The position numbers and the translations under genes are program-made. Below the pieces are notes generated by a model that made no database searches, was not told where the DNA came from, and was given only the letters and a program-made list of their open reading frames with translations. Below, one piece after another: positions 58,693 to 62,303 of a stretch of 64,000 nucleotides of DNA (position 1 is its first letter; every line of letters starts with the position of its first letter). Location: sequence record NC_061418.1; one strand, given 5' to 3'.

Positions 58693-58752
58693 CTTTTTGC
58701 GCCTTCAATTGATGAAAAAGAAAATGTATGGTTCATAAAATTAACAGCATAA

Positions 58753-58776
58753 AGAGAGGGTCTTTCGACCCTCTCT
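58753..58776 (-). terminator. Terminator hairpin at the end of the RNA cluster
   Basis: AGAGAGGGTC-TTTC-GACCCTCTCT (GAAA loop on the minus strand). Confidence 0.72.
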
Positions 58777-58789
58777 CGTACTGACTAAT

Positions 58790-59450
58790 AGTCAAAAGGA
58801 TCTCAGTGTTTAGCTCATAGATGACTTATCGCACATCATCCTTTTCATGTTAAGGTCGCCACCGAAACATGTTTATTCTCGGCTATACGAGTTAGCTTAA
58901 TTTCCAGATTTTTAATACCCGATCCCTTCTACGTTGGAGAAATGGATCGAATAGGGTGACGCCCCCGGACATTTTTGCCGGCTCCTTGCACCTCTTTCGC
59001 CGGAATCCCCGGCTGAGGTCTATGGTCTATGGCCGCCTATTTTCGCTCTAAGGCGTAGGCCGCCGAAATTGACAGGCGTCATAATTAGTACCCCTCGGCC
59101 GATTCCGCGGCGCGTTTAACCGGCGGGTCGCCGAAGTCTTTGTCTCACGAGAGTTACCAATAAGTTATTGCTTATTGGACAAATCATTCGGATACGATTC
59201 CGAACTCCCTTCCTACCGAGCCTCTACTACCGAGCAGGAGTCGAACCTGCACTCTCTGTAAACAATATCACTTGACTAGAGCAGTATTGTAAAGGTTACG
59301 TGGACTTTAAAAGTGTAGAATGGGTATCAGTTAATTTGTTGCGGCCGCATACCGGTAACTGACTTCTTCTACTAGCGCCACCACTGACTCCGGTGTCTCG
59401 CCTAGTGGCGTTGTGCGACCCATTAACTCGCACTCTCTCTTTTAAGTCCA
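58790..59450 (-). ncRNA. Putative large structured ncRNA(s)
   Basis: No ORF of 60 aa or more; many nested inverted repeats; orphan T-arm at 59234-59250; lies between tRNA-like genes and a terminator. Confidence 0.55.
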
Positions 59451-59454
59451 ACTT

Positions 59455-59562
59455 TGGTTGATAGGTACCGAATCGAACGGCTATCTCAGGCTCCCATGTT
59501 AAGGCGCCCCTCGTATGAGAGGGGGCCTAATGCCCGCGCTTTACCTTTAAGCTAGCCTATCA
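59455..59562 (-). ncRNA. tRNA-like RNA with a 40-nt expanded anticodon loop
   Basis: TGATAGG/CCTATCA acceptor, GCTT/AAGC D-arm, CGGGC/GCCTG stem, T-loop TTCGATT, ends ACCA. Confidence 0.78.
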
Positions 59563-59815
59563 TTGAATAGGTTCCCTAGCACTCAATGAGTATCATCTAC
59601 ACCAGCAGCGCCCGGTGTTTAGCCGAGATGCAATTATGCTTAAATGGGTCGTATTTAACGGCTCATTTATTCGTCGATGATTTACGTAGGGATAACAAGG
59701 AGACATCCCCCTCAGCACGCCGAGGTCAACTTTTTCCTTAGGTCAAGATTAACTCTCCGCAACATTAAGTCGCCTGGTTAACCCCTGCCTTTAGTCTAAG
59801 CAAGATGTCATTATT

Positions 59816-59905
59816 TGGCAGAGAGTGAGAGATTCGAACTCTCGGTACCCTTTCGGATACACTCCCTTAGCAGGGGAGCGACTTAAACCGCTCATCCAAC
59901 TCTCT
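59816..59905 (-). tRNA. trnS: tRNA-Ser(GCT)
   Basis: AGAGAGT/ACTCTCT acceptor, CTCCC-CTGCTAA-GGGAG, long variable arm, encoded CCA. Confidence 0.95.
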
Positions 59906-59912
59906 ATTAAAA

Positions 59913-59989
59913 TGGCGACTCTTCCAGGACTTGAACCTGGGACCTACAGCTTAACAGGCTGCCGTTCTAACCAACTGAACTAAAGAGTC
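59913..59989 (-). tRNA. trnN: tRNA-Asn(GTT)
   Basis: GCAGC-CTGTTAA-GCTGT anticodon arm, TTCAAGT T-loop, CCA. Confidence 0.95.
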
Positions 59990-59995
59990 ATTATT

Positions 59996-60070
59996 TGGCG
60001 GTGCTACGGAGAATCGAACTCCGGTCTCCTCCGTGACAGGGAGGTATCCTTTCCGCTAGACGATAGCACC
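59996..60070 (-). tRNA. trnD: tRNA-Asp(GTC)
   Basis: CCTCC-CTGTCAC-GGAGG, TTCGATT, GCCA. Confidence 0.95.
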
Positions 60071-60077
60071 TTTTGTT

Positions 60078-60179
60078 TGGTTGTTCCCTTCCGGATTTGA
60101 ACCGGCAACCTCCTGCTAAGCAGTGGGCGGCGCAGTGGCCGCCGATGCAGGCGCTCTACCTAGTTGAGCTACGAGAACA
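60078..60179 (-). ncRNA. tRNA-like RNA with a 30-nt expanded anticodon loop
   Basis: TGTTCTC/GGGAACA acceptor, GCTC-AACTAGGTA-GAGC D-arm, CCTGC/GCAGG stem, TTCAAAT T-loop, ends ACCA. Confidence 0.8.
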
Positions 60180-60186
60180 TTGAATC

Positions 60187-60262
60187 TGGAGCAAGCAGCG
60201 AGGTTCGAACTCGCGACCTATGACTTGGAAGGACATCGCTCTACCAACTGAGCTATACTTGC
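60187..60262 (-). tRNA. trnG: tRNA-Gly(TCC)
   Basis: GCAAGTA/TGCTTGC acceptor, loop CTTCCAA, TTCGAAC, TCCA. Confidence 0.95.
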
Positions 60263-60340
60263 TTTGAATTTCGTTCATAAGATGATGAAATTACTTAATT
60301 TTTGATCCGCGCACCAGTATTCTCGTTAACCAACGGGGAA

Positions 60341-60796
60341 TTATATCTTTGGTTTCTTATTAGCCTTTTTACAGGCAGCTCTGTAACCGACCGTATCAAA
60401 AATACCATTGATGGAATGTTTAATGATTATACCCTGAGAAAGTCCGGTAAATAACGCGGCATCTCTAATCGTGTCATAGATCCACCCATCAATAACCCAA
60501 CAAGTTCTCCGTTTCACGTCGGCGTAATAATGAACTTCTTTACTATCATGATAATTATCACGATCCGTACCAATAGACAAATGCTCAGGATTACAGCAAC
60601 GGGTGTTATGGCAAGAATGTCTTACTACTTTACCAATTGGCACTGGCCCATAAACTGTAGTGAAGACAAATTTATGAGTTGTCCAATATTTACCGTTCCG
60701 TGTAAACTGGCCGTAACCAGCGCTATTGCAAGATTTATTCCAATTCCAGCAACCGGTTACTTTATCTACCGTTGTATTTTCTTTAATAAATTCCAT
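60341..60796 (-). CDS. Free-standing HNH homing endonuclease
   Basis: GCWNW, GYG, VVRHSCHNTRCCNPEHL..GT..DN; C-terminal NUMOD1-like YDTIRDAALFTGLS; AT-rich. Confidence 0.9.
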   Translation of the reverse strand: MEFIKENTTVDKVTGCWNWNKSCNSAGYGQFTRNGKYWTTHKFVFTTVYGPVPIGKVVRHSCHNTRCCNPEHLSIGTDRDNYHDSKEVHYYADVKRRTCWVIDGWIYDTIRDAALFTGLSQGIIIKHSINGIFDTVGYRAACKKANKKPKI

Positions 60797-60835
60797 GTGT
60801 TTATAATCTCTTTCTGTTAATTGTTTATCAACAGA

Positions 60836-60843
60836 GTGATATA
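60836..60843 (-). promoter_or_regulatory. Candidate early promoter core TATATCAC for the HNH gene
   Basis: AAAATA-TATATCAC about 40 nt upstream of the HNH ATG. Confidence 0.5.
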
Positions 60844-60860
60844 TATTTTAAGGAATTTTG

Positions 60861-60889
60861 GTTGCTCTATCCTGCTGAGCTAAGAGGAC
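60861..60889 (-). pseudogene. 5-prime fragment of a tRNA-Arg-like gene
   Basis: GTCCTCT-TA-GCTCAGCAGGATAGAGC-AAC, i.e. acceptor 5-prime strand plus D-arm with A20; no anticodon or T-arm follows. Confidence 0.7.
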
Positions 60890-60894
60890 GTAGA

Positions 60895-60979
60895 TGGTGC
60901 CCAGGGCGGGGCTCGAACCCGCACGCGATAAAGCGAGGGATTTTAAATCCCTTGTGTCTGCCGATTTCACCACCTGGGC
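60895..60979 (-). tRNA. trnL: tRNA-Leu(TAA)
   Basis: GCCCAGG/CCTGGGC acceptor, AGGGA-TTTAAAA-TCCCT, variable arm, ACCA. Confidence 0.95.
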
Positions 60980-60984
60980 AAATA

Positions 60985-61060
60985 TGGTGGGTCCAGCAGG
61001 TTTTGAACCTGCGACCAAGCGATTATGAGTCGCCTGCTCTAACCACTGAGCTATGGACCC
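60985..61060 (-). tRNA. trnI: tRNA-Ile2(CAT, lysidine type); Met less likely
   Basis: AGCAGGCGACTCATAATCGCTTGGTCGC core closely matches enterobacterial tRNA-Ile2; ACCA end. Confidence 0.88.
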
Positions 61061-61279: not shown

Positions 61280-62137
61280 TTATTTTCCCGACGCTGTACC
61301 CTGAACGCGCGCAGAGTTCTTCAGAAGAATTGTAGAGGCATCTTCAAGGAACTGGTCGCTGTCGCCTGAGGTATTCGCTACCACCAGGGTTTTAGTGCAA
61401 GGGACTTTTACTGTCGAATTGAAAAGGATGCCCGAGTCGGTTGTTGCTTTTTCGATCGTGTACACCGCTTTACCGTTCGGCAGTTTTGCATCAGCATTCC
61501 AGGAGTTGAAATCAATGATCTCGAGTCCCGAGTCTTTTTGCATGACTGCGTCCAGGAATTTATTATTCCGGTCGGGTGCAGAAACCCAAAGGAACGCGTC
61601 GTATTCGCCAGTATTCACTTTAGCCAGGGAACGGATACCGCCTTTGGCATACGTTTCAACTTTCGCGTAGTTTTTCTCCAATGTCTGGAGATACTGCCAC
61701 GAAGCGTAAGATCCAGAGGTAGGTTCGCCCACAGCGATCTTCGTACCTTCTTTTAAATCACCTTTACTGGTGACCTTACCGTCTTTCTTGACGGCGACAA
61801 AGACGCACTCGCTGGCCAATTCGCCAATGATATCAACGTTCTGTGCTTCATTGGCATGACGCGAACGCCAGAACTGATAGGCATCAGCTTGGGTAAACCC
61901 GATAGTGGCTTCTCCCGAGGCTACACGATCAAGGTTATCGAGTGAGCCTTTAGAAGGGACAACCGAGGTCTGGTAACCGTACTCACCCAGAGCACTGGCT
62001 AAGTTTACACCATAAATGGCGTTATAGGTTAAACCTTGTTGACCGGTGGTAATAACAATTTTGCCATCGGCCGCGGATACGCCAGCACTCATGCAAAGTA
62101 ACGCTACCGAAATCACGGCAAAAGCAAGTTTCTTCAT
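61280..62137 (-). CDS. TAXI-family TRAP transporter solute-binding protein
   Basis: Signal peptide MKKLAFAVISVALLCMSAGVSA; ITTGQQGLTY, SKGSLDNL, GFTQADA, DLKEGTKIAVGEPTSGS; start moved to 62137. Confidence 0.85.
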   Translation of the reverse strand: MKKLAFAVISVALLCMSAGVSAADGKIVITTGQQGLTYNAIYGVNLASALGEYGYQTSVVPSKGSLDNLDRVASGEATIGFTQADAYQFWRSRHANEAQNVDIIGELASECVFVAVKKDGKVTSKGDLKEGTKIAVGEPTSGSYASWQYLQTLEKNYAKVETYAKGGIRSLAKVNTGEYDAFLWVSAPDRNNKFLDAVMQKDSGLEIIDFNSWNADAKLPNGKAVYTIEKATTDSGILFNSTVKVPCTKTLVVANTSGDSDQFLEDASTILLKNSARVQGTASGK

Positions 62138-62303
62138 TTGCATTCCCTTTAAGGAAAGTATGGGTGTCAAGCGGCATAACCGCCACAGTGAATTTGAGAG
62201 GCTGACAAGTTGGCCCAACATGTGCATTAATCATGTCACGGAATAAAGAGGCGCCTTTGTTTCGTGCTACCTGTAAGGGTTTAAGATTAAGTTAGTTGCA
62301 AGT

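Follow-up and report, generated by a model that had tools for sequence, protein, structure and literature searches.

A conserved RNA module of about 205 nucleotides (nt) was identified on the minus strand of a 64,000-nt stretch of sequence record NC_061418.1 (the window), which comes from Klebsiella phage KpLz-2_45 (MN871446; genus Siatvirus; 297-kb genome; record positions 182700-183900 correspond to window 58700-59900). The comparative evidence indicates that the module (window 59077-59296) is a previously undescribed, phage-specific RNA family, predicted to be double-pseudoknotted. It lies in a tract free of open reading frames (ORFs; 58780-59815, about 1030 nt), downstream of a minus-strand tRNA array (59816-61060) that holds six standard tRNA genes and one odd 97-nt tRNA, with an HNH homing-endonuclease gene among them (60341-60796, minus). 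The first-pass annotation, made from the letters alone, had described 58790-59220 as a large structured non-coding RNA at the 3' end of the tRNA operon. Such an RNA is supported. It is a composite rather than a single 430-nt unit, and consists of the module and a clade-specific 3' extension. Its 5' boundary had been drawn too short at 59220; the structured unit reaches at least 59296, and tRNA-like elements follow up to 59815. What is new is an RNA family so far without a name; comparison supports it firmly, its structural model is concrete, and a literature search returned no description of it.

The module was analysed by a covariance model and by covariation on 11 and 16 sequences. It is built from short hairpins (Table 1) joined by segments that are invariant between helices: GAAGGGAGU, AUGAU..GUC, GUAACUC, GAGACAAAUGAC, GGUUAAAC, the H4 loop CGGAAU and GAGGGG. 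At the 31 hairpin pairs of the 11-sequence alignment, 95.8% of cells were paired, against 77.7% after shuffling (0 of 500 shuffles reached 95.8%); 17 pairs had changed on both sides, and slid controls gave 33-42%. The 16-sequence alignment, with 37 pairs including both pseudoknots, was 94.9% paired (75.9% shuffled), with changes on both sides at 23 pairs (114 cells) and slid controls at or below 47%. RNAalifold on the homologues placed compensatory changes at 18 of 36 pairs of the 11-sequence alignment. All nine inverted repeats reported from the single sequence were found, at or a few bases from the positions given for them, and the hairpins exceed chance, being retained in relatives through compensatory changes.

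The two pseudoknots, PK1 and PK2, were found by an all-against-all covariation scan of the 16 sequences and then confirmed. PK1 was 100% paired and covaried at three of three pairs (AGU/ACU, GGU/ACC, AAC/GUU, GAC/GUC and UGC/GCA; the window copy has AGU/ACU). PK2 was 92% paired, with covariation at three of its four pairs (ACCC/GGGU, GCC/GGC, GCUA/UAGC and ACAC/GUGU; the window copy has ACCC/GGGU). A long-range helix drawn by RNAalifold between the T1 loop and the GGGG tail was dropped; the local T1 hairpin and PK2 covary. Nearly every member carries a seven-base T-loop hairpin of the UUCRANU kind. This is T1 in KpLz-2_45 and in L020, L032 and L035 (L numbers designate retrieved loci), and H1 in FBKp24, L007, D6, L030, L031, L034, Holyagarpour, SA002 and OBP; SXP01 and L019 have only an eight-base variant, located in T1. 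The covariance model built from the module alignment detected exactly one copy at each member locus, the window included (59077-59286, 178.8 bits, full model). The window copy has H1-H4 with the invariant linkers, PK1 and PK2, the features by which the family is defined.

These data bear directly on the view that the tract holds decayed tRNA genes or a DNA-level feature (a homing-endonuclease scar, recombination site or origin) and has no RNA function. T-arm-like hairpins and tRNA-like fragments do occur in the tract, and HNH homing-endonuclease genes are found in these tRNA arrays. Double substitutions nevertheless keep pairing across distant phages, including the long-range pseudoknots and strand-specific G.U pairs, and the centre is conserved above the coding flanks; neither pattern is expected of pseudogenes. 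Because of the covariation this reading is largely refuted and extremely improbable, and it is the sole alternative to be largely excluded.

The RNA is encoded on the minus strand. This was settled by a G.U pair that is invariant in 16 of 16 sequences and would be A.C on the opposite strand, and by the orientation of the module, which is that of the tRNAs at every locus having tRNAs. Folding of 58790-59220 (431 nt) gave z = -2.84 against dinucleotide shuffles on the minus strand, better than the controls, and z = -2.20 on the plus strand; 59296 to 58745 (552 nt, minus) gave z = -4.28. The comparative evidence is the stronger test than folding energy. The G+C fraction is 0.48-0.51 over the tract and tRNAs and 0.49-0.51 over 58800-59300, against 0.38-0.43 in neighbouring genes, which agrees with the enrichment noted at first. 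Freedom from ORFs was likewise borne out, over a tract of about 1030 nt rather than 430: throughout 58780-59815 there was no ORF above 51 amino acids on either strand. Small-ORF coding was rejected, the largest ORF (51 amino acids, 59296-59451) lying inside an insertion that FBKp24 lacks.

The tract is carried by thirteen phage records, namely ten near-identical records labelled Klebsiella or Serratia, two of FBKp24 (a Maaswegvirus) and Centimanus, and also by the IMG/VR contig L007. Between KpLz-2_45 and FBKp24 the flanking genes are 75-88% identical and the tRNAs 97-100%; the central tract contains long runs that are invariant in all clade lineages and is conserved well above the flanking genes. 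The family name Chimalliviridae, given in the first-pass annotation as a group to compare with, is not that of the record, which gives Siatvirus and no family. A profile of the clade matched Shewanella phage SXP01 in part, and significantly (E = 1e-16), and further members were obtained with a degenerate word pattern of shared invariant motifs and by blastn with new members. Homologues of the module (E from 1e-16 to 1e-55) are present in Pseudomonas phages OBP, D6, Holyagarpour and Ebordelon, in Salmonella phage SA002 and Shewanella phage SXP01, and on seven IMG/VR contigs of 34-277 kb (L015/L019, L016/L020, L030, L031, L032, L034 and L035), so that the family reaches nine or more lineages beyond the Klebsiella clade. 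Homology in all distant members is confined to window 59077-59296, and the tract is therefore modular.

The degenerate-pattern scan yielded no bacterial copies in GTDB (one genome per species) or JGI metagenomes, and 5,426 E. coli genomes and the PLSDB plasmids were likewise without a match. L017, L018 and L021 were chance pattern matches, rejected by nhmmer and the covariance model. Distant loci reached by synteny through the upstream TAXI-family protein (L010-L012) were without tRNAs and without the RNA, and the covariance model found nothing in the Erwinia loci.

Part of the stretch first noted (59077-59220) thus belongs to a module that stands alone in other phages, and only 58790-59076 is specific to the Klebsiella/Serratia-labelled clade. 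This 3' extension, of about 300 nt and near-invariant, begins seven bases past PK2 and makes up most of that stretch. Its order, 5' to 3', is the first subdomain E1, H6, an A/U-rich invariant linker, H7, H8, H9, H10 and the terminator. Where FBKp24 or L007 differ, most changes are paired. UUCGGA/UCCGAA becomes UUCAGG/CCUGAA or UUUGGG/CCCAAA, and CCAAUAAG/CUUAUUGG becomes CUACCGUG/CACAGUAG or CUCGCGGA/UCUGCGAG; further paired changes are CGGCG/CGCCG to CGACG/CGUCG, ACCUC/GAGGU to ACCCC/GGGGU and GCCGG/CCGGC to GCCGA/UCGGC. The RNA had been proposed to stop at a terminator at 58753-58776, and a hairpin with a U-run was found there. Its stem has four compensated variants (MJ359, Centimanus, FBKp24 and L007), and the FBKp24 annotators likewise place a terminator at the corresponding site.

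Outside the clade no relative of the extension was detectable by relaxed blastn or an nhmmer profile, except for short matches in L031 and Erwinia phages, and exact-word scans of IMG/VR with invariant extension words returned the same clade only. Contig L031 shares the first 26 nt of the extension. Where the clade has the E1 closing stem, L031 carries, downstream of its own module, an acceptor-like stem of 7-8 bp (GACGUCA/UGACGUC, then ACC) that encloses tRNA-like arms and differs from the E1 stem by one compensated position. This acceptor-like stem and these arms hint that the first subdomain may descend from a tRNA-like unit. In Erwinia phage Ea35-70 and about 15 relatives (L026 2001-2025) a 25-nt match, GGGGGCGUCACCCUAUU.GAUC (E = 4), to the closing-stem region of the extension was seen in an unannotated gap 140 nt downstream of tRNA-Asn; it does not extend. 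Just 5' of the terminator stem (58777-58786, minus), AGUACGAGAG equals ten bases of the 23S rRNA sarcin-ricin loop core and is invariant in nine of nine clade sequences. The 3' half of the loop motif is missing, so the identity is probably due to chance.

Rfam release 15 was searched by cmscan over 58780-59815 at gathering score and then at E<=10. No named family matched at either level, which is the ground on which the RNA is regarded as a new phage non-coding RNA. Scans of the window and 12 related loci returned only tRNAs, an unrelated group I intron and, away from the module, weak YrlA-like matches. No match to the RNase P RNA was obtained at E<=10. Transfer-messenger RNA (tmRNA) was absent by ARAGORN, including its relaxed mode, with no Rfam tmRNA-clan match and no conserved small ORF. 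Inside 58780-59454 neither ARAGORN nor Rfam called a tRNA; only isolated T-arm-like hairpins are present (T1, and H1 in relatives). Group I and II introns gave no match in the window region, and the same type of scan detects a group I intron (73.7 bits) in L034 (4445-4755, minus), about 3.5 kb from the module on a 258-kb IMG/VR contig.

GOLLD (RF01998) and ROOL (RF03087) had been named in the first-pass annotation as large ornate RNAs beside phage tRNA clusters. Kinship with them was not borne out by the covariance models, which gave no match in the tract or in the 12 homologous loci. The likeness is one of setting and size. GOLLD and ROOL are large, GC-rich, multi-hairpin RNAs, often phage-borne beside tRNA genes, and the window RNA is phage-borne and directly downstream of a tRNA array. 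Both are described in a preprint as forming RNA-only multimers (bioRxiv 10.1101/2024.12.08.627333). A large self-assembling, ornate RNA of this type, a multimeric particle working with the phage tRNAs, would fit the roughly 550-700 nt of the GC-rich, multi-hairpin RNA with its extension and insertion. The window RNA differs in not being homologous by the Rfam models, even at E<=10, in belonging to phages of Gammaproteobacteria, and in having a unit of only about 205 nt in common across phages, with the large part limited to one clade. An ornate particle is thus very unlikely.

A ribozyme, self-cleaving or acting on tRNA-like substrates such as the neighbouring insert-bearing tRNA-like genes, was weighed against the same scans. 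The double-pseudoknot core, with its invariant junction nucleotides, is of a kind typical for small ribozymes, and odd tRNA-like genes with inserts of 23, 33, 46 and 94 nt lie near the module in several phages. Several module loci are nevertheless without such genes, and no conserved cleavage-site context was identified. The only Rfam ribozyme match, to pistol in the 3' extension (19.5 bits, E = 1.6), was taken as chance. We regard catalysis as a long shot.

The YrlA model (RF02553) did not match the module at any locus, and the module differs from YrlA in being about twice as long and pseudoknotted. Weak YrlA matches in the window fall on true tRNAs only (22.5 and 18.1 bits); YrlA-like matches occur beside the module in L020 (39.7 bits), SA002 and L031. 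Y RNA-like RNAs reuse tRNA parts (a T-arm and a D-arm-like GG loop), and tRNA enzymes can handle them (PMC4201824). The motif GNCGAAN0-1G, present in the Ro60-binding stem of Y RNAs (PMC4201824), is fitted once by GGCGAAAG (58994-59001, H5 bulge), with a chance expectation of about 0.3 per 550 nt. Neighbouring ORFs contained no Ro60/Rsr (TROVE) domain, the rest of the 297-kb genome not being scanned. The matches L020 10676-10742, L023 1900-2017 and L031 4311-4372 score 27-40 bits, below the gathering score, and that in L020 comprises a T-arm, a 7-bp closed acceptor-like hairpin and a D-arm.

The operon of phage T4 is laid out in the same way: its tRNA genes are followed by a homing-endonuclease gene, and this by the stable RNAs rnaD and rnaC. 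Like the window RNA, these small stable RNAs close a phage tRNA operon on its 3' side, and rnaC carries a T-arm. At 119 and 139 nt they are shorter than the module (about 205 nt), and the T4 tRNA region showed no similarity by nhmmer (E<=100) or by the module covariance model. The roles of rnaC and rnaD ('species 1 and 2' RNAs) are unknown (PMC3014915). RNA C and D are positional analogues of the module.

The module often occupies a tRNA slot and acts like a unit of the tRNA array. In L030 it fills the gap between tRNA-Leu, which ends at 1196, and tRNA-Ser, which starts at 1398. On its 3' side tRNA-Asn follows within about 8 nt in OBP, a tRNA about 5-15 nt past the module in SA002, and an immediately adjoining tRNA-Tyr in L034. 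On its 5' side tRNA-Leu is about 20 nt ahead in D6, and in FBKp24 an insert-bearing tRNA-like 'Pro' gene with an ACCA end directly abuts it. Both the OBP-like and the Klebsiella clade have genes for tRNA-Asn(GUU) and tRNA-Ser(GCU) in linkage with the module.

From these positions we infer that the RNA is transcribed together with the tRNAs, processed and active in trans. Transcription of the minus strand would reach the module and extension at the end of the tRNA operon and stop at the terminator. Host enzymes of tRNA maturation would set the module free as a separate, stable molecule: RNase P would cut at the 5' end of the next tRNA, and RNase E or Z, with exonucleases, would act at the 3' end of the preceding one. 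Once free, the RNA would work in trans in the infected cell, and its most likely role would be that of a tRNA-like decoy, or of a scaffold, for a factor recognising T-loops or tRNA elbows. In the Klebsiella/Serratia-labelled clade the module is fused to its extension. This overall picture of a trans-acting, tRNA-processed RNA is given a probability of about 0.5.

Several observations weigh against it. No tRNA lies within the retrieved stretch in Holyagarpour, L032 or L035, and what follows the module in D6, Holyagarpour and SXP01 is an unrelated ORF, so that neighbouring tRNAs are common without being obligatory. The window module has no tRNA on its 3' side and continues directly into the extension. 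Neighbouring genes, compared across loci and with Pfam, include no conserved partner protein, and it is position that points to processing and to action in trans. In the extension, covariation is confined to H5, H8, H9 and the terminator (in FBKp24), with pairing-preserving single changes in H6, and the invariant centre speaks neither for nor against the helices predicted there.

Mimicry of tRNA shape, as decoy or scaffold, is favoured as the function because of the T-loop, the GG-containing invariant loop and the 3' tail folded onto a hairpin; it is put forward tentatively, as a possible though not a probable role. The module may resemble the tRNA-like structures of plant RNA viruses of the turnip yellow mosaic virus (TYMV) type in some features: a 3' tail paired to a hairpin loop (PK2 on H3), a T-loop and, usually, a conserved A past the pseudoknot. 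The module differs from the TYMV type in having no encoded CCA after PK2, in belonging to a tRNA operon of a DNA phage and, in the window, in a 3' tail that runs on for another 300 nt. A more specific version, rather unlikely as a whole, is a pseudoknotted 'pseudo-tRNA' in a tRNA slot that RNase P and RNase Z cut out and that hijacks or decoys a host factor by which the shape of tRNA is read; candidates are the ribosome, the CCA-adding enzyme, RNase P and defences of the anticodon-nuclease type. The module may also be given a CCA tail or even be aminoacylated. If so, the insert-bearing tRNA-like genes would belong to the same counter-defence toolkit, and the Klebsiella-clade extension would add a second function.

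The same positions would also suit a cis-acting processing or stability element of the tRNA transcript, the compact pseudoknotted fold and the extension serving as an exonuclease barrier or as an organiser of RNase E, P or Z cleavage, and the free RNA having no function of its own. Whenever tRNAs are present the module is inside or at the edge of their array and abuts them directly, and in the window it stands between the last tRNA-like gene and the terminator. Such a role appears unlikely: the invariant linkers and loops (GUAACUC, GAGACAAAUGAC, GGUUAAAC and CGGAAU) and two pseudoknots exceed what a barrier needs, conservation spans hosts from Klebsiella to Pseudomonas and Shewanella, and the module is also found at the three loci without a tRNA in the retrieved stretch.

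What lies downstream was considered for a riboswitch-like or other cis-regulatory leader of a gene or terminator. The size is aptamer-like, the junctions are invariant and the stems variable, and a covarying linker further downstream offers the T1 3' strand an alternative partner. In SXP01 and Holyagarpour an ORF begins some 40-60 nt past the module, and the window module is followed by the terminator and a small membrane-protein gene. Against a leader, the downstream sequence varies, with tRNAs in OBP, SA002, L030 and L034, unrelated ORFs elsewhere and the 300-nt extension here, and there is neither a common regulated gene nor a conserved expression platform. Only a slim chance is left to it.

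Ever since RNA C and RNA D of T4, phage tRNA operons have been known to harbour stable RNAs, for which, to our knowledge, no purpose has been established. The present family of putatively stable RNAs, unrelated to those of T4, is now defined as the second; it has strong comparative support and occurs in phages of jumbo and medium size whose hosts are Klebsiella, Salmonella, Pseudomonas or Shewanella. Its culturable members (OBP, FBKp24, D6 and SA002) make the purpose of these RNAs testable in several host systems, and the two-pseudoknot model indicates which mutations to make. An unannotated functional element is also added to the Klebsiella jumbo phages studied for therapy.

Table 1. Coordinates of RNA features in the window; helices of the module and extension are listed 5' to 3' on the RNA, followed by upstream neighbours and by the inverted repeats as read from the sequence.
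Feature	Position	Strand	Remarks
Module	59077-59296	minus	conserved, about 205 nt; covariance model and covariation on 11 and 16 sequences
H0	59262-59290	minus	5'-most hairpin of module
T1	59234-59250	minus	T-arm-like; after H0
Hairpin c	59222-59234	minus	after T1; then linker GAAGGGAGU
PK1, 5' strand	59226-59228	minus	loop of hairpin c; pairs with 59135-59137, just 5' of H3
H1	59185-59206	minus	after GAAGGGAGU; then AUGAU..GUC
H2	59157-59178	minus	then GUAACUC
Hairpin i	59144-59153	minus	between GUAACUC and GAGACAAA
H3	59120-59134	minus	after GAGACAAA; then GGUUAAAC
PK2, 5' strand	59125-59128	minus	loop of H3; pairs with 3' tail 59090-59093
H4	59097-59112	minus	loop CGGAAU; after GGUUAAAC
3' tail GAGGGGU	59090-59096	minus	last element in order, after H4
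E1	58957-59081	minus	first subdomain; closed by UGACGCC/GGCGUCA, then CC; minimum free energy and consensus folds
H5	58990-59019	minus	within E1; GGCGAAAG bulge; two compensated pairs in FBKp24
GCCUA...UAGGC hairpin		minus	in E1; predicted fold
H6	58917-58958	minus	long hairpin; two single substitutions retain pairing (U.G to U-A; G-C to G.U)
H7	58878-58891	minus	58878-58958 nearly invariant in 9 sequences
H8	58846-58871	minus	loop with invariant UCGGUGGCGAC; CAUGUU/AACAUG is GUGUU/AACAC in FBKp24
H9	58794-58845	minus	AAAAGGAU/AUCCUUUU is AAGGAA/UUCCUU in FBKp24
H10	58782-58794	minus	distal hairpin of 3' extension
Intrinsic terminator hairpin	58753-58776	minus	ends tRNA/non-coding RNA transcription unit
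Insertion domain	59302-59449	minus	about 150 nt; 11-bp closing stem (59302-59313 with 59439-59449)
tRNA-like gene 'Pro(UGG)'	59455-59562	minus	33-nt anticodon-loop hairpin; encoded ACCA end; ARAGORN intron option
Conserved non-coding element	59574-59700	minus	about 125 nt; spacer after tRNA-Ser
AAAAGGAT/ATCCTTTT	58794-58845		inverted repeat, seen in sequence
CATGTT/AACATG	58846-58871		inverted repeat, seen in sequence
CTCG/CGAG	58878-58891		inverted repeat, seen in sequence
ACCCGATCC.../...GGATCG..GGGT	58917-58958		inverted repeat, seen in sequence; long hairpin
ACCTC-GCCGG/CCGGC-GAGGT	58990-59019		inverted repeat, seen in sequence
CGCCT/AGGCG	about 59034-59058		inverted repeat, seen in sequence
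CGGCG/CGCCG	59121-59133		inverted repeat, seen in sequence
CCAATAAG/CTTATTGG	59157-59178		inverted repeat, seen in sequence
TTCGGA/TCCGAA	59187-59204		inverted repeat, seen in sequence

Between the module and the tRNA-like 'Pro(UGG)' gene sits the insertion domain, present in KpLz-2_45, MJ359 and L007 and cleanly absent from FBKp24 and Centimanus; it looks like a mobile or optional RNA domain. The 'Pro(UGG)' gene is complete, not split, near-invariant among relatives and annotated 'tRNA-OTHER' in MJ359. A second insert-bearing tRNA-like gene, 'Ser(GCU)+23 nt', was found at window 60078-60179 (minus), and others in L002, L007, L034 (7775-7903) and L023 (2662-2843). The inserts are GC-rich anticodon-loop hairpins of 23-94 nt in genes with an encoded ACCA end, and were found only by the intron mode of ARAGORN. 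Relatives keep these insert-bearing genes. We know of no splicing in bacteria for such anticodon-loop hairpin inserts, and they may be lasting enlargements of the loop, acting for example as decoys or giving resistance to anticodon nucleases.

The non-coding element at 59574-59700 was without an Rfam match. It is 89% identical over 65 nt and 86% over 29 nt to a sequence beside tRNA-Ser in Erwinia phage pEa_SNUABM_10, and 91% over 46 nt to Shewanella phage SXP01. Counterparts are L014 3584-3709 and L013 3619-3664, with a compensated hairpin change from CUCA/UGAG to CCCA/UGGG.

Among protein-coding neighbours, a relative of the window HNH gene (47% identical) was seen in L019 (4340-4813), directly after an apparent 5' tRNA half (acceptor and D-arm), as if inserted into a tRNA gene. 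In Holyagarpour (L024 2030-2260, 2360-2494) there are an unannotated cysteine-rich small ORF upstream of the module and a perfect 23-bp long-range stem around about 88 nt. Just upstream of the window tRNA array (61280-62227, minus) is a gene for a TAXI/NMT1-like periplasmic solute-binding protein, unusual in a phage, of which 73-75% identical copies occur in unrelated viral contigs.

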